Shown here piece after piece: positions 23,365 through 33,720 of a stretch of 64,000 bases of DNA (within the stretch, counting starts at the first letter, position 1; each line of letters opens with the position of its first letter). The position numbers and the translations under genes were made by a program. The DNA comes from Macrostomum hystrix (lineage: Eukaryota > Animalia > Platyhelminthes), in assembly GCA_950097015.1 (NCBI GenBank), contig CATNEN010000032.1, positions 2,666,001 through 2,730,000 of the forward strand, in the 5' to 3' direction. The notes beneath the pieces were generated by a model that saw nothing but the letters and a program-made list of their open reading frames with translations, did no database searches and was not told where the DNA came from.

Positions 23365-25030
23365 TGGCATGAGAAACTAGTCGGCATGAGAAACTAGTTG
23401 GCATGAGAAACTAGTCGGCATGAGAAACTAGTCGGCATGAGAAACTAGTTGGCATGAGAAACTAGTCGGCATGAGAAACTAGTTGGCATGAGAAACTAGT
23501 CGGCATGAGAAACTAGTTGGCATGAGAAACTAGTCGGCATGAGAAACTAGTTGGCATGAGAAACTAGTCGGCATGAGAAACTAGTCGGCATGAGAAACTA
23601 GTTGGCATGAGAAACTAGTTGGGATGAGAAACTAGTTGGGATGAGAAACTAGTTGGCATGAGAAACTAGTTGGCATGAGAAACTAGTCGGCATGAGAAAC
23701 TAGTTGGCATGAGAAACTAGTTGGGATGAGAAACTAGTTGGCATGAGAAACTAGTCGGCATGAGAAACTAGTCGGCATGAGAAACTAGTCGGCATGAGAA
23801 ACTAGTTGGCATGAGAAACTAGTTGGCATGAGAAACTAGTTGGGATGAGAAACTAGTTGGCATGAGAAACTAGTTGGGATGAGAAACTAGTTGGGATGAG
23901 AAACTAGTTGGGATGAGAAACTAGTTGAGATGAGAAACTAGTTGGGATGAGAAACTAGTTGGCATGAGAAACTAGTTGGCATGAGAACTAGTTGCATGAG
24001 AACTAGTTGGGATGAGAAACTAGTTGGCATGAGAAACTAGTTGGGATGAGAAACTAGTCGGCAAGAGAAATTAGTTGGGATGAGAAACTAGTTGGCCTGA
24101 GAAGCTAGTTGGCATGAGAAACTAGTCGGCAAGAGAAACTAGTTGGCATGAGAAACTAGTTGGGATGAGAAACTAGTCGGCATGAGAAACTAGTTGGGAT
24201 GAGAAACTAGTTGGCCTGAGAAACTAGTTGGCATGAGAAACTAGTCGGCATGAGAAACTAGTCGGCATGAGAAACTAGTTGGGATGAGAAACTAGTTGGC
24301 CTGAGAAACTAGTTGGCATTAGAAACTAGTTGGCATGAGAAACTAGTTGGCATTAGAAACTAGTTGGCATGAGAAACTAGTTGGCATGAGAAACTAGTTA
24401 GATAAGAAACTAGTTGGCATGAGAAACTAGTTGGCATGAGAAACTAGTTGGCATGAGAAACTAGTTGGCATGAGAAACTAGTTGGCATGAGAAACTAGTC
24501 GGCAAGAGAAACTAGTTGGCATGAGAAACTAGTTGGCATGAGAAACTAGTCGGCATGAGAAACTAGTTGGCATGAGAAACTAGTTGGCATGAGAAACTAG
24601 TCGGCATGAGAAACTAGTTGGCATGAGAAACTACTTGACATGAGAAACTAGTTGGCATGAGAAACTAGTCGGCATGAGAAACTAGTTGGCATGAGAAACT
24701 AGTTGGCATGAGAAACTACTTGACATGAGAAACTAGTTGGCATGAGAAACTACTTGACATGAGAAACTAGTTGGCATGAGAAACTACTTGACATGAGAAA
24801 CTAGTTGGCATGAGAAACTAGTTGGCATGAGAAACTAGTTGGCATGAGAAACTAGTCGGCATGAGAAACTAGTTGGCATGAGAAACTACTTGACATGAGA
24901 AACTAGTTGGCATGAGAAACTAGTTACATAAGAAACAGTTGGCATGAGAAACTAGTTTGGATGAGAAACTAGTCGGCATGAGAAACTAGTTGGGATGAGA
25001 AACTAGTTGGCATGAGAAACTAGTTGATAT
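23365..25030. repeat. 17-bp minisatellite, ~1.7 kb
   Basis: (GGCATGAGAAACTAGTT)n. Confidence 0.97.
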
Positions 25031-25676
25031 GAAAAAGTAGAAAACTATTACTGAGAAAGTAGTAGGCAATAGTAAGGTCAATAGACCTTAGTCTATTAGA
25101 AACTAATAGACTTAATATATTAGTTACGGCAAGAGAAGGACCCCACTAAATTAATGCTGAATGATGTCAAGTCACTTACATTTACCTAGTACGAGCTCGT
25201 ATTGTAAGCAACGAGTCGACTTTCAATTGGCAGACGAATACAGCCTGCTTTATATACGAACTTTTTTTCGCTCCTAGAAGCTGACAGAAGACACACTTGA
25301 AATAGTCTGATAGCCTTTTCAGTTAAAGACGAACAGCAGAATCGAAGGCAATGGTTTCTGCGGAAGCTACGGGTTTCTCTGTATGCTGCTTGAATTATCC
25401 AAGGATATAACAGTGTTTTATTCTCTCTGTGCTTATCTCCCCTCACTCCCAGATCCCCTCAAGCTATATACTCCAAAAGCAAATTGTGAGGCTTTTCCAA
25501 TCCGCCCAACCCCAGCTAATGGCTATGCAGGCCAATCAGCGTTTTTTCTGAGGGACCTGTAGAATTTTAGCAAATAATAGTCTAATTTAATCTCACACCC
25601 ATTGGACACATTGGCCATTGGCTGTTGGATGCCATATAGACATATAAATGTGAATGTCATGCTGCACGCGTAATAC

Positions 25677-27442: not shown

Positions 27443-29384
27443 CTTAGTCTCGGATAGTCTTGATAGTACATCTATTCACTCGAGTAACACACAAGTCTCA
27501 GGTTTTTCTAACTTTGCGCTTTTCATGATCGCACTGTACATGCAGCTACAGCTCAAGTTCTGTGTAATGCCTTAGTAACACATATTTACAATTTTTTACA
27601 TCGGAACGTGGACGTTTGTATAGTATAGTATATAATAGTATATAGTCTACAGCTGCAACAGTAGACCGATTAATAAAAATGACTACTACCAGCGCGAAAA
27701 AGGACTTAAATTACTGTAAAAGTTTAGCGGGTTAACATAACGACTTTGACTATTATCAACAAATGCATTGTGCTTAAAGTACGTACTTGACTTATTAACA
27801 TGTTCTCTGACTCTTATATTATTTTTATAGCTTTTTAAAAAAAAGTGTAGTTTCTTTTTTATTATTTTATATTCATTTCAAACTTCATACAAAACGCTTT
27901 GCTCATTGTATGTTTGCAAATTCAATTAGAAAATATTCCCTGGCTTCTGAATCTTGCGCTCGAGTATTAAGCACACTACGTGTATGTTGTGGATTCGTTA
28001 CCTTTTGGTTTTTCGGATAGGCCCAGTTTAAGTAAGAAGCATTTAAGCACATGTGTTTGTATTTTAAATATAAACACTAGAATAAATATTTTTCATTGCC
28101 GCCCTATGTATCAACAGTAGTTATCATAGTTAAAAACATAACTATTCTTCCTACCGGCTGCCTTGGACAAGTTGGAGTGCCATATGGCATGAGTATTTCA
28201 ATTGGTCGTTAATGTCTCAAAAAGCATTTATGATTTAGCTACTAAATTCGAAGTTTATCTTAACTTGGCTAAAGTGTGCCAACTGCACTGTCTAAAGTTT
28301 CTTATATTGTTTACTCTCAGTGTTAATATTATCTGTCAATCCCCTGGACCTTTTTTATCTTTAACTAGCTAAACATGCTAGTTAGCATTAGCTGCTTAAT
28401 TTTTGTAGCCTGTATTGAAAGAACAGACCTAGATAAGTTATAGGGGCTCCAGTGAGAAATCAAAAATAACAAATTCCATGTTTTTGGTTTTCTTGTGTTA
28501 CAGATCTTGCTTGTCTGAGTTAGGCCTAAGACACCTAACTCATCAAAATTGGTCAAGTAATAAAAAAGTTATGATAATTTTTTGATCAACATTTTAGTTG
28601 TTTTCATAATTTATTTTTCCCATAAGGGGCTGTGATCCAGATGACAGGATAGATTTGACTTGGAAAACAAAAATTGCAATAACTTATTTATTTTTTTAAT
28701 GGATTTTGAGAATTCCAAAAGCATATAGTTCATTTTTTGTTATCTACACTATGGAGTATATATATCTTCTATAAATACTAAGTATCAAAGTATAAATTTC
28801 GATTTTAAATTGAATAGGATTACTATGCTGACAAGACATGTTTATTTTACAATATAAAACTCTTGGCTTTATAGAAGTGGCAAAGCCATACCTATATCAT
28901 ATCTTAACGTATAGACATCATATAGACATCAATTTACTATTTACAGTCAATTGCAAAAGCCATCTGAAATGTGTAAAGGGGGTACATTAGAGAAACATAT
29001 TTCTGGGAGATTCTGCTAAAGGAAAATAGAATGGTTTGAGTATATCCCATTCTACATAAAATTTTAATGAGTTACGCTTGGAAAACACTATAAACAATGG
29101 TTGAAAACAAAATATGAAACTTTCAAACAGAAAAGTTTATTAAACAAATAATTATTTTTCTTTTATAGAATTTTAAATTATCTTTCTAAATATTTACTTT
29201 GTTTGACTCAGTATCAACACAAAAATCAACACATATACCAAATTTGTGAAGTTATAATTTGGTATATGTAAATATTTACCATGCTTATGATTTATATTAG
29301 GTAACTAATTGTAACTTATGTCACTTTTGTTACTAATAATTTGGTTATTAACAGTAACATTATTAACAAACCATAGCATTTAAC

Positions 29385-29442
29385 ATGATGATACAATTAT
29401 TTTCCTGAACTGCAAGTGATGGTTCAAGCTCAACAGGACTGA
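29385..29442 (+). ncRNA. Box C/D snoRNA, copy 1, in the predicted 5'-UTR intron of the H2A gene
   Basis: C box ATGATGA 29385-29391, D' CTGA 29405-29408, C' GTGATGG 29416-29422, guide TCAAGCTCAACAGG 29424-29437, D box CTGA 29439-29442; flanked by donor AG|GTAACT (29301) and acceptor TTACTTTCAG (29533). Confidence 0.8.
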
Positions 29443-29561
29443 GAATTTTCTGCATTTACTTGCTTATTATTTGCTACTTATTTTTAGTCTTTTAAGAATA
29501 CTACACCTAAATTTTATTTTACATTACTTTCAGCTTAGTTAGCTTACCTACTTAGCTAATT

Positions 29562-30253
29562 ATGTCTGGACGCGCTGGTGGTAAGGCTGCTCGTAAGTCG
29601 ACTGGAAAGCAGCAGAAGAGCAAGTCTAACCGGGCTGGCTTGGTGATGCCAGTTGCCAGGGTGCATCGTTATCTAAAGCTTGGTCGCTATGGAAAGAAAA
29701 TTAGCGTTGGCGCCAGTGTCTACTTGGCCGCTGTATTGGAGTACCTGGTTGCTGAGGTCAATGAGCTGAGTGGTGAGTTTGATCAATGTGCTTCCTGTCA
29801 ATTATGATTTTCCGAAGCTATAGGTTAGGTTTTTTACATTCTTAACCATTGCGTTAATTTTTTCTGTATAATGAATCAATTATGATGATAAAATACTTCC
29901 ATCCGGACCAAATTAATACTCATGACGGTTCAAGCTCAACAGGACTGAAAATCGTTGCGTGTTTGTTGTTTTATGTGCTTAAATTTTCTTGTTTTGCTAC
30001 TGTGAGTAGTTCATATAATAATATTTTTTCTGCTTTATTTAAAAAACCAACACTAGGCAACGCTGCAGTCGCCAATAAGCGCAAGACTATTACGCCGCGC
30101 CACATTATGCTGGGCGTGCGCAACGATGCCGAGCTCAATGAGTTACTCAAACACGTCCACATCAGTTTCGGCGGTGTGCTGCCGTCCATTCATCCCGTGC
30201 TGCTGAAGAAGAAAGGCAGCGTGCCGGCTGTGCCGCAGAGCAAAAGCGCTTAA
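29562..30253 (+). CDS. H2A: Divergent intron-containing histone H2A variant (135 aa)
   Basis: Exons 29562-29772 and 30057-30253 (phase 1, G|GTGAGT...CTAG|GC): [32 protein letters not shown]|[36 protein letters not shown]. No histone stem-loop seen after the stop. Confidence 0.95.
29882..29948 (+). ncRNA. Box C/D snoRNA, copy 2, in the H2A coding intron
   Basis: C box ATGATGA 29882-29888, C' ATGACGG 29922-29928, identical guide TCAAGCTCAACAGG 29930-29943, D box CTGA 29945-29948; 108 nt upstream of the 3' splice site. Confidence 0.8.
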
Positions 30254-33200
30254 GAGAAAGGAAAAGAGACCGGAGAATTCTACGAAAACTCGGGCGCTTT
30301 ATTTAAAATGTAGTCCGGCGGCAGCAATGTGACTCTCTTAGTGTTCTTCAAATTAGAGCTGATGCGATTTCAATTTACTTGTTAATTATCTTTTTACCTT
30401 TAGACATACTTTGCTCCTTAATTTGTTAAATACTATCTCATCATTTTATTCGCGCTAACAATACGAAAAAAGCAGTTAGCTTTATTCTCCTATTCACTTT
30501 TTAAGCTGTTGTTTTACCTGGCAATTGTGCTCTTTTTCATCAATTTTCCATTTTAATCACGCAACCCCATTTACAACTGGCTCGTGTTGTTTTGGCTCCC
30601 ATTGGTTCATTTATGTATAAATCGCCACTGATACGTGTGCTCTGCTGTTTTGTGTACAAAATATTGCAAATTGTCATTTCTGCTACATATTCACAGTTAT
30701 TTGTTATTAGTTTAAGCCTTTTATAATAATTAACTATGAAATTTGGTCTTTAATATGTATATTAATTGTATTTTAGTATTGTATTTTTCTGGTACAGTAA
30801 TTTACCGGGATTTATGAGGTTAAATGGTTTTTTTATTGTAAAAATAGTGAGTCAAAGACTGTTTTGTACGCAGCGAAGTTGAAATTTGCTTTTCTCTAAT
30901 AAAATATATATTGCTAAACTCAAAATAATGGCCGGGTTTCAAGTTATTCCTGTTAAATTTAGTACTTTTAGTATGAGCAGCAAAACAAGAAGCAGGTTGT
31001 CTTACTAGACTTTGTCGTGAAATTTTCTGAGCACGTTGAACTCAAATAATAATGTCCGAGTTGATGTGAACGACAACGTTCTCGTATACATGTCATTGAC
31101 TATGACATGTTAGTGAAGGTGTGAATCAACTAATTGCAGCAGTCCAATTGAATAGGAATGTTGCCATAAGCTACATCGTGAAAGCGATACAATAAGTGAA
31201 GCCGGGAACGCAGTCTGTTGGCAACTGCACTGAATGATGGCTTTGCCCATTATTTACACTGGATTGAATCGCACAGCTTTATCTTAGCTTCGTTAAGAAA
31301 CTAAGAACGAAGTTTCTTAGAACTAAGAACCTGTTTGAGTTTGATTATCAAACAGGCTAAACAGTCCTTGATTGAAAGCATGTGAGAAGCGTCGTGTGAT
31401 CTTTTGAGTTGCGGGTGACTCGGCGCGGTGCAGGTCCGGTGGTTGCTGGCGGCAATTGTCACTGCTCATGACAGCTCGACGTCTGAGAAGCGAGCGCTGT
31501 ATAACGGCTGCGCTGGGCATGCCGGCGATTGGGGTGGAAGCGGAGTGGCCACATCTTGTCTATGCCGCATTAGCATGTCATAATCAAAGTTCGTGGATTG
31601 GAAACTGAGCTTACTTACGGTTACAGGTAATATATCCTCTATTAGATGTGTCCCTCACCCCGTTTTAGCTTGCGGGAAGCTAAAGCAGCTCGCTGGCTGC
31701 CACAAGAACCCACTCTTTGGTAATAGACCTTCACTGCTTGTTGTTTACCCAAGCTGTCGTGTTTATAAACTTTAGAACTGTCGAGTCAGCTTGGACCGTT
31801 GTGAATATATTTACATCTAGAGGACATATGATCTGTCACTTACAGTACGTGGATCTTTACTACGTTTTAAATATTTGTCCAAGCATGGTAGAATATAAAA
31901 AATATAATTATTCATGCATTCGCTAGGATTATTTCGCTACGTTAATTGCATTCCTGCGCAGGTGCAAATATTATTGGAAAATGAATTGGCTTGCATTTAC
32001 TATTGCGTAGTACAGAGATATTGTGTGGCTTTGAGATTCATTCAACAATAGTGTTGCTGCTATAGTAGAGAATGCCTTAATTCTGAATAGACGTCTAAAT
32101 AGACTCAGGCTCTGCTCAGCAGGTGGGGAATGGAGTCAAAATAAATGGCATGTTACACAATGCCCAGACTGACGAAGGCAGGCATCAGGTGGCCGCATTG
32201 AAATACATCTGCAGTTATAATATATATACAGGCCACATTAGTTAAATGCTCAACTGCATGGGTGTGAGTTTGAATAGAACCTCTGCAGTTGGTGGGGCAT
32301 TTTTAACAATGCCGCCATTTATATGGAAAGAAAGAATTAAGTTAAGCTTCGTCAGCCATGTGAAAATAGATTGCCTTTAGTGGATGGTTTGAGCATATAG
32401 AGTTGTGTGCTCGAGTCCGACGTGCCTAGTCATGCGTGTCACGCGCAATGTGATCAAACTTGAGTATAAGCTCAGCTAACTAAATACTAGCGTACATTGC
32501 ACGCAGCCATTGGAGAATCTTCTTTCTTTCTTCTGCTGCTGCATGCTGGCCTCCTAAACCCCCCGTCCTCCTGAGTGAGCATTCAAGCTAAACTGCATGC
32601 TCAAACTCATTCCAAACACTAGCCCTCTAACAATGGCCCGTGGAGCGGGGTTGGCGGCTGCTGTGTGAGGGTAAGGAAGGGGTGTCGTGCACCCCCCCAC
32701 CATCGGGACCTGTACAAAAGGCGCTACTCGACTGTGCTAGCTTTTAGTAAATAATAAGATAGTCTCTTATAAGAGAATTTCGTGTTGGTTAATTGTGTGC
32801 CATTAATATTTTACCCGAGAGCTACTGGGCGAGAGCAAGGTGACATGCGAAGCAGAGACTAGTTTGAAATGACCTGTTTTGTGAAACTCGGGTCTTTCTG
32901 ACAAAGGAAAACACTGCTCGTGTCTCGTATTGCACCTTCCCCGCTCATACGCGATCGGACTCAATCATCAGCACCGTCTAATGCCCATTGCTCCCACGAA
33001 CCATCGATAAAATTATGATTTAAAATATTACCAATGTGATCCCCACTATAGTCAGCATGGGGTTTGTGTGCCAATCAGACTTTAACACGCGCCATTAACG
33101 GGTGAAAGCTGTGGATCAAGAATTCGAATGCAGCAGTGCAGTAATCTGCTTGTGCATGGCATGTATTCATATGTCTATCTTATCAGATCATTGCTTCATA

Positions 33201-33429: not shown

Positions 33430-33720
33430 ATATCAGTCTGTAGATATATCCACATTCAGTCTGTAGATATCCACATTCAGTCTGTTGATATCCACCCTCA
33501 GTCTGTTGATATCCACATTCAGTCTGTTGATATCCACACTCAGTCTGTTGATATCCACATTCAGTCTGTTGATATCCACATTCAGTCTGTTGATATCCAC
33601 ATTCAGTCTGTTGATATCCACATTCAGTCTGTAGATATCCACATTCATTCTATTAATTATCCGTTATCAGTCTGTAGATATCCACACTCAGTCTGTAGAT
33701 TATCCGTTATCAGTCTGTAG
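33430..33720. repeat. 21-bp minisatellite upstream of the alpha-mannosidase start
   Basis: (CAGTCTGTTGATATCCACATT)n. Confidence 0.93.

Follow-up and report, generated by a model that had tools for sequence, protein, structure and literature searches.

In Arabidopsis, SnoR29 (SnoR29.1 and SnoR29.2), a box C/D small nucleolar RNA (snoRNA) that acts with fibrillarin, guides 2′-O-methylation of 25S ribosomal RNA (rRNA) at Gm2410, Um2411 and Gm2392. Here we describe two box C/D units with a predicted guide for the nucleotide equivalent to G2410. They lie at a histone H2A-variant gene of the flatworm Macrostomum hystrix, within 64,000 nucleotides (nt) of contig CATNEN010000032.1 (assembly GCA_950097015.1, positions 2,666,001 to 2,730,000, forward strand). 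This whole stretch is referred to below as the window, and all coordinates in it are counted from its first letter.

The Arabidopsis site has been studied from two sides. Gm2410 was mapped with high confidence by RiboMethSeq and listed there as “snoRNA not found” (PMC8583080), and it has been assigned to the D′ guide of SnoR29; in a transfer DNA (T-DNA) line in which SnoR29.2 is blocked, methylation of the targets of this RNA was significantly reduced (PMC8053127). Tomato and tobacco carry the equivalent site as Gm2412, and for Ostreococcus tauri it is predicted as Gm2252; no equivalent is listed for human or yeast (PMC11542601). In Dictyostelium, no 2′-O-methylated nucleotide (Nm) is listed at the position equivalent to yeast G2409. 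A table compiled for Dictyostelium assigns two nearby yeast sites, Um2417 to snR66 and Um2421 to snR78, the latter being the counterpart of human U52 at Um3904.

We consider it highly probable that the window units function as two redundant box C/D snoRNAs of ~65–75 nt, each with a single guide, and derive from RNA that is removed from the H2A-variant pre-mRNA. That both units are real snoRNAs is, on the strength of their sequence and its conservation, very likely.

Two box C/D units with a common guide

Positions 28800–30900 were read by eye and with a motif script, and two box C/D units were found on the plus strand, as an earlier note made from the letters alone had described. The features are given below together with their support. 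R1 denotes a search model built from environmental relatives alone, E its expect value, A3 an alignment with the orthologs from Macrostomum lignano, and L053–L055 the loci of that species that carry them.

29385–29442, plus strand: snoRNA unit 1, C box to D box, 58 nt (sequence; R1, E 4.9e-11; orthologs in L053–L055)
29385–29391, plus strand: box C of unit 1, ATGATGA (invariant in A3)
29405–29408, plus strand: box D′ of unit 1, CTGA (CCTGAACT invariant in A3)
29417–29422, plus strand: box C′ of unit 1, TGATGG (invariant in A3; TGATGG is common to many environmental relatives)
29423–29438, plus strand: guide of unit 1 (29424–29437 complement large-subunit (LSU) rRNA CCUGUUGAGCUUGA; invariant in A3)
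29439–29442, plus strand: box D of unit 1, CTGA (sequence)
29882–29948, plus strand: snoRNA unit 2, C box to D box, 67 nt (R1, E 7.2e-09; orthologs inside the M. lignano intron)
29882–29888, plus strand: box C of unit 2, ATGATGA (sequence)
29904–29907, plus strand: D′-like box of unit 2, CGGA (sequence)
29923–29928, plus strand: box C′ of unit 2, TGACGG (sequence)
29929–29944, plus strand: guide of unit 2, 16 nt, the same as that of unit 1 (sequence)
29945–29948, plus strand: box D of unit 2, CTGA (sequence)

Canonical C and D boxes are present in both units and are invariant in the M. lignano orthologs. The internal C′ and D′ boxes are recognisable in both, degenerate as is usual for such boxes, and are likewise kept in the orthologs. 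In unit 1, 13 nt separate the C box from D′ and 8 nt separate D′ from C′; the corresponding spacers of unit 2, measured to and from its D′-like box, are 15 nt each. The mature RNA from unit 1 probably extends a few nt beyond 29385–29442 on either side. The D boxes end 91 nt (unit 1) and 108 nt (unit 2) before the respective acceptors, the same values as had been reported earlier.

In both units, positions 2–15 upstream of box D are taken up by an antisense element of 14 nt, TCAAGCTCAACAGG. The window holds exactly two copies of this 14-mer, each on the plus strand and immediately followed by (A)CTGA; by our own arithmetic, ~0.0005 exact matches would be expected by chance in 64 kb with both strands counted. 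Its complement in LSU rRNA falls in the helix 74 region, at the foot of domain V. The segment is general among eukaryotes, as the earlier note had stated: primers for 28S in fish and other animals are placed on it (28S_R-147; PMC5035012), and publications on bivalves, arthropods, fungi, apicomplexans and plants contain the same string. Counted upstream from box D, the fifth base of the guide is C (29434 and 29940), and the predicted target is therefore the G of CCU-G-UUGAG. Since this G precedes yeast Um2417 by 8 nt and Um2421 by 12 nt, it corresponds to yeast G2409; since Arabidopsis Um2422 equals yeast Um2421, it also corresponds to Arabidopsis G2410. The yeast numbering proposed earlier is consistent with these offsets, and G2409 is indeed not on the yeast methylation list, on which the two neighbouring uridines are known sites. 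The target G is thus not new among eukaryotes, being already known in the green lineage. A literature check, which was not exhaustive, found no record of Gm at the yeast-G2409 equivalent in any animal, and in Macrostomum its 2′-O-methylation is a prediction from the guide.

Comparison of the two copies with each other showed that box C is identical at 7 of 7 positions and the block from C′ to D at 25 of 27. Outside these elements similarity falls to the level of shuffled sequence: the spacer from C to C′ is 0.48 identical (shuffle mean 0.49), and the 60-nt flanks are 0.57 and 0.65 identical (shuffle means 0.61 and 0.63). The flanks have therefore diverged and the boxes and guide have been retained, in agreement with the earlier description.

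A protein search with the exon-1 open reading frame (ORF) of the H2A-variant gene identified BOX15_Mlig005952g1 (P0001, 135 amino acids) as the closest M. lignano protein; over exon 1 the two proteins are ~96% identical. The P0001 gene has three genomic copies in the M. lignano assembly GCA_002269645.1 (L053, L054 and L055), and in each of them model R1 locates two units, the first ~108 nt upstream of the ATG and the second inside the intron. Synteny, suggested by the earlier note as a check, holds for L054, where the gene, both units and an alpha-mannosidase neighbour (Glyco_hydro_38N) are kept. Third codon positions are identical between the window and M. lignano at just 33 of 70 and 33 of 64 sites, so that neutral sites are near saturation. 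Judged from sequence, the spliced leader and the closest protein point to Macrostomum, but the window is probably not one of the Mlig_3_7 copies compared here and represents either a congener or a deeply diverged homeolog. Over the same distance the non-coding flanks are 0.28–0.49 identical and the units 0.79–0.84, with all boxes and the guide invariant. Between the D box of unit 2 and the acceptor there are 108, 106 and 108 nt in three lineages whose introns measure 284, 608 and 596 nt, a constancy that fits assembly of the small nucleolar ribonucleoprotein (snoRNP) coupled to splicing.

The stretches in front of D′ behave differently. In unit 1, 4–5 of the 13 bases before D′ differ from the M. 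lignano copies in A3, and D′ guides were rejected as conserved guides because their sequences differ both between paralogs and between orthologs. P0002 and P0003 were set aside; their contigs, which encode other H2A proteins, are intronless or transcript-like and hold no unit.

The family extends beyond Macrostomum. In a metagenome scan, the guide followed by the D box was present in 52 loci, among which 18 distinct sequences also have a C-box-like heptamer ~40–60 nt upstream and a C′ box like TGATGG; by our own arithmetic ~0.3 such C boxes would be expected by chance. Most of the 18 have clear terminal stems of 4–6 bp. The others seem to be accidental matches within GC-rich coding DNA. In the 64-kb window, R1 matches the two units only. 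Exons beside several of the relatives encode RPL12/uL11 (L006 and L035) or an MA3-domain, eIF4G-like protein (L033, L039 and L052), and for L012, L047 and L042 a neighbour can be proposed from shared sequence alone. A tblastn comparison of the H2A exons with the 52 metagenome loci found no histone host there. The remark in the earlier note that a histone host is unusual is borne out by these relatives, several of which adjoin RPL12 or MA3-domain exons instead.

Paired copies within ~0.4–1 kb are seen in the relatives too, at 101–176 and 1112–1187 of L042 and at 778–854 and 1182–1256 of L051. Between the two copies of L042 lies a third, degenerate one (832–869), with TCTAGCTCA in place of TCAAGCTCA. 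Since L042 and L051 also hold pairs, duplication of the snoRNA inside one host gene is recurrent.

Upstream of unit 1, the AT-rich region contains a near-perfect 14-bp inverted repeat at 29228–29271 (acatataccaaatt / aatttggtatatgt), with weak, sub-threshold matches to microRNA-like Rfam families (mir-1277, E 2.3; mir-10, E 4.8). It is probably a mere AT-rich palindrome.

The H2A-variant host, its intron and its outron

The gene that carries the units is resolved by RNA contigs and domain matches into the following parts.

29532–29533, plus strand: AG of the spliced-leader trans-splice acceptor (leader bases in contigs of runs X1, X2 and X5)
29534–29772, plus strand: exon 1 of the H2A-variant gene, ATG at 29562 (RNA contigs; Pfam Histone; PDB H2A matches, E 2e-16)
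29773–30056, plus strand: the only cis intron, 284 nt, GT..AG, phase 1, hosting unit 2 (RNA contigs)
30057–30254, plus strand: coding part of exon 2 including the stop codon (Pfam Histone_H2A_C, E 1.5e-14)

Exon 1 matches Pfam Histone at E 9e-4, which for the exon alone is below the curated cut-off, and matches H2A chains in PDB at E 2e-16. With the histone fold and the H2A C-terminal motif both found, the host is a divergent member of the H2A family; this upholds the earlier assignment to an H2A variant, and the M. lignano ortholog is called Histone H2A in UniRef. The gene is polyadenylated, and its 3′ untranslated region (UTR) extends past 30700, as contigs continue beyond 30698.

The junction 29772/30057 is present in RNA contigs of four public runs, which come from two studies and carry three organism labels; the contigs are exon-only. 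The coding intron predicted at 29773–30056 is therefore real, because the contigs skip it at this junction and its ends are GT..AG. Two window ORFs read into the intron; their exact products are without a database record.

Three contigs (from X1, X2 and X5) reach further upstream and carry 23–25 extra bases at 29533/29534 that are not present in the window. These bases match the 3′ part of the 35-nt Macrostomum lignano spliced leader (PMC8629364). Position 29533 is therefore a trans-splice acceptor, and unit 1 sits in the outron and not in a demonstrated cis intron. The earlier note had placed unit 1 in a 5′-UTR intron at 29301–29533. Its acceptor is real, but among the RNA contigs of the four runs no transcript supports a cis donor at 29301, and the leader is joined at 29533 instead.

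Several features of the transcript were recorded beside these results. The spliced leader ends in ATG, and its junction with exon 1 reads ATG CTT AGT TAG, a 3-codon upstream ORF that stops 16 nt short of the H2A ATG at 29562. At ~2970–2980, upstream of the conserved 5′ UTR, the M. lignano copies read TTCCAG (L053), TTCATG (L054) and TGCATG (L055), so that the AG is kept in L053 only; in L055 the letters are similar to those that close the leader at its 3′ end (TTGCATG). Runs X1 and X2, which share organism label A, have A and not G at 29597, a synonymous change of Lys12 from AAG to AAA, and runs X4 and X5 agree exactly with the window.

The encoded protein departs from canonical H2A at two known positions. 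In exon 2 (30130–30180), F stands in place of Q104 (TIAQGG becomes ISFGG), and the acidic-patch residue E91 (canonical numbering) is A. In nucleolar H2A, glutamine Q104 carries a methyl mark set by fibrillarin, and the host of two fibrillarin guides thus cannot bear this mark itself. The coincidence may mean nothing, because Q104 is absent from other H2A variants as well.

Further from the gene, a 21-nt tandem repeat on the minus strand (33433–33648) reads as NVDINRL repeats and is followed, from 33742 onward on the plus strand, by exon 1 of a gene resembling lysosomal alpha-mannosidase. Positions 24000–25200 are strongly asymmetric between the strands, with a GC skew of +0.28 to +0.44, an AT skew of +0.2 and no ORFs, and may be a purine-rich repeat.

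Proposed biogenesis and competing explanations

The proposed pathway has both copies arising from RNA that splicing removes. Copy 2 would be made from the only cis intron, and copy 1 from the outron, in which it lies 91 nt ahead of the point of leader addition. During splicing, 15.5K/Snu13, Nop56, Nop58 and fibrillarin would assemble on the C/D kink-turn, and exonucleases would then trim the excised, debranched RNA until the protected core was left. The 14 nt just ahead of box D would pair with LSU rRNA 5′-CCUGUUGAGCUUGA-3′, and fibrillarin would 2′-O-methylate the G opposite the fifth guide base (yeast G2409, Arabidopsis G2410). We infer that the small RNAs accumulate and that the target is methylated; maturation of copy 1 from the outron is likewise proposed because its position is conserved and its distance to the acceptor is intron-like.

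A number of points weigh against this account. Neither unit folds with a stable 5′/3′ terminal stem (both are weak, with z-scores of 0.1–1.1), and by eye the terminal stems amount to only 3–5 interrupted A-U or G-U pairs; single-strand folding is, for its part, expected to be uninformative for C/D RNAs. The Rfam search suggested by the earlier note was run on the 64-kb window and returned no family at gathering or E-value thresholds. The best sub-threshold scores, 18 bits for snR56 (threshold 54) and 16 bits for SNORD12 (threshold 43), are box matches only, and a search of Rfam with 20 environmental relatives gave no match to the snoRNA itself. The loci behind model R1 were picked by the window guide, so the R1 E-values are not independent of the guide. 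The predicted target match draws on the general conservation of the LSU segment and not on the host 28S. The RNA evidence consists of assembled contigs, in which a 70-nt RNA or its ends cannot show. Finally, an outron keeps its capped 5′ end after trans-splicing, and because the cap is retained, copy 1 needs an extra 5′ processing step.

The last point leads to the alternative that copy 1 is an independently transcribed snoRNA gene, or uses a shared start site a little way upstream and matures from the capped 5′ end by a different route, and merely adjoins the H2A gene. It is established that an outron cap would block simple 5′-to-3′ trimming. The stretch 28900–29532 has no RNA contig coverage; the region upstream of unit 1 is very AT-rich (24–30% GC), so that a promoter could sit anywhere in it, and no ORF of at least 70 amino acids was found within several kb upstream of the H2A gene. 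Against an unrelated neighbour stands the arrangement itself. The end of the unit 1 D box lies 108–109 nt before the ATG in M. lignano and 119 nt before it in the window, the distance of 91 nt to the acceptor is similar to that of the intronic copy, and the trans-spliced pre-mRNA must run through the unit 1 region if its start site lies further upstream. We therefore regard an independent origin of copy 1 as unlikely, though it deserves to be taken seriously.

It is improbable that copy 1 resides in a cis-spliced 5′-UTR intron (29301–29533) behind a non-coding first exon ending at 29300. GGTAAC at 29300–29305 is a possible donor, the acceptor of such an intron is real, and minor isoforms drop out of contig assemblies. 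However, all three contigs that reach the acceptor at 29533 continue into the spliced leader and not into window sequence, and the M. lignano copies show no conservation around 29301.

The units could also be real snoRNAs whose relevant target is another RNA (a small nuclear RNA, transfer RNA or messenger RNA), or could act as chaperones without methylation. Orphan and multi-target C/D RNAs are well established, and the target site is unmethylated in yeast, human and Dictyostelium. Yet very different eukaryotes have the identical guide, always in the same register beside box D, its complement is among the most conserved LSU segments, and the same nucleotide is methylated via a C/D guide in Arabidopsis. 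On this evidence a different target or a chaperone role is decidedly improbable. That the units are chance motifs or functionless, decaying relics, as the weak terminal stems, the uninformative folding and the lack of an Rfam match might suggest, can be dismissed as hardly credible, given boxes and a guide that are invariant between paralogs and between lineages with near-saturated synonymous sites, and a 14-mer found twice where ~0.0005 matches are expected.

Taken together, these comparisons favour two redundant snoRNAs matured from the removed parts of the H2A-variant pre-mRNA. They give flatworms, whose non-coding annotation is sparse, a well-supported snoRNA family that Rfam lacks, and they predict a ribose methylation near the peptidyl-transferase and tunnel-entry region that has so far been mapped only in plants. 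The outron position offers a simple natural test of whether trans-splicing supports snoRNP biogenesis as cis-splicing does. A broader interpretation, for which we see the case as evenly balanced, is that copy 1 is matured from the outron, with the Y-branched by-product of spliced-leader trans-splicing as a snoRNA precursor, and that Gm at yeast G2409 is an ancient modification lost in yeast, Dictyostelium and vertebrates. If so, splicing-coupled snoRNP assembly would extend from cis introns to trans-splicing, the 5′ end of unit 1 would need a decapping or endonucleolytic step, and plants, green algae and at least some animals would have the Gm in common. Were the methylation confirmed, the site would be ancestral and repeatedly lost, which bears on how the pattern of rRNA modification evolves.

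The histone host is best viewed as a curiosity; host choice is flexible, with relatives beside RPL12 and eIF4G-like exons, and a histone host alone shows no link between chromatin and the ribosome. The earlier suggestion that transcription of a chromatin variant is coupled to a specific rRNA methylation found no support beyond the trivial co-transcription of any hosted snoRNA with its host, and such a coupling is speculation.

Comparison with described systems

Yeast snR66 (Um2417) and snR78 (Um2421; human U52/SNORD52, Um3904) are known C/D guides to the same rRNA strand. They target nucleotides 8 and 12 nt downstream, and by our own derivation there must be overlap between their antisense elements and the TCAAGCTC part of the window guide. 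They differ from the window units in register and in target nucleotide, and the G targeted here is unmethylated in yeast and human.

SnoR29 shares the predicted target nucleotide but not the layout. In SnoR29, the G2410 guide precedes a degenerate D′ box and the D guide is directed at G2392, whereas in the window units the G2410-type guide precedes box D. The dual-guide arrangement of SnoR29 is absent: the stretch before D′ is not conserved and, by our own reading, is not complementary to the GCGGGGAAAG region. Convergent evolution of the two guides is possible, the comparison having been made with SnoR29 as described and not with its sequence. In Ostreococcus tauri, the snoRNA predicted for 25S Gm2252, the algal equivalent of Arabidopsis Gm2410, is an annotation prediction only. 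The GC-rich marine relatives L011, L015, L025 and L030 may come from such algae, a guess from GC content and habitat.

With respect to genomic setting, the limited literature search that we made found no described case of an outron-hosted or a histone-hosted snoRNA. In most respects, however, the units resemble classical intron-encoded C/D snoRNAs, of which there is one per intron, on the host strand, ~70–110 nt before the 3′ splice site. The window units likewise lie on the sense strand, in RNA that is spliced out, and their spacing from the 3′ splice site is constrained. They differ from the classical pattern, in which hosts are genes for ribosomal proteins or translation factors, in that the host encodes an H2A variant and an outron holds one of the copies. 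The kind of gene is thus an ordinary one, with a predicted target site of the plant type; what is unusual is the histone host together with the outron position.

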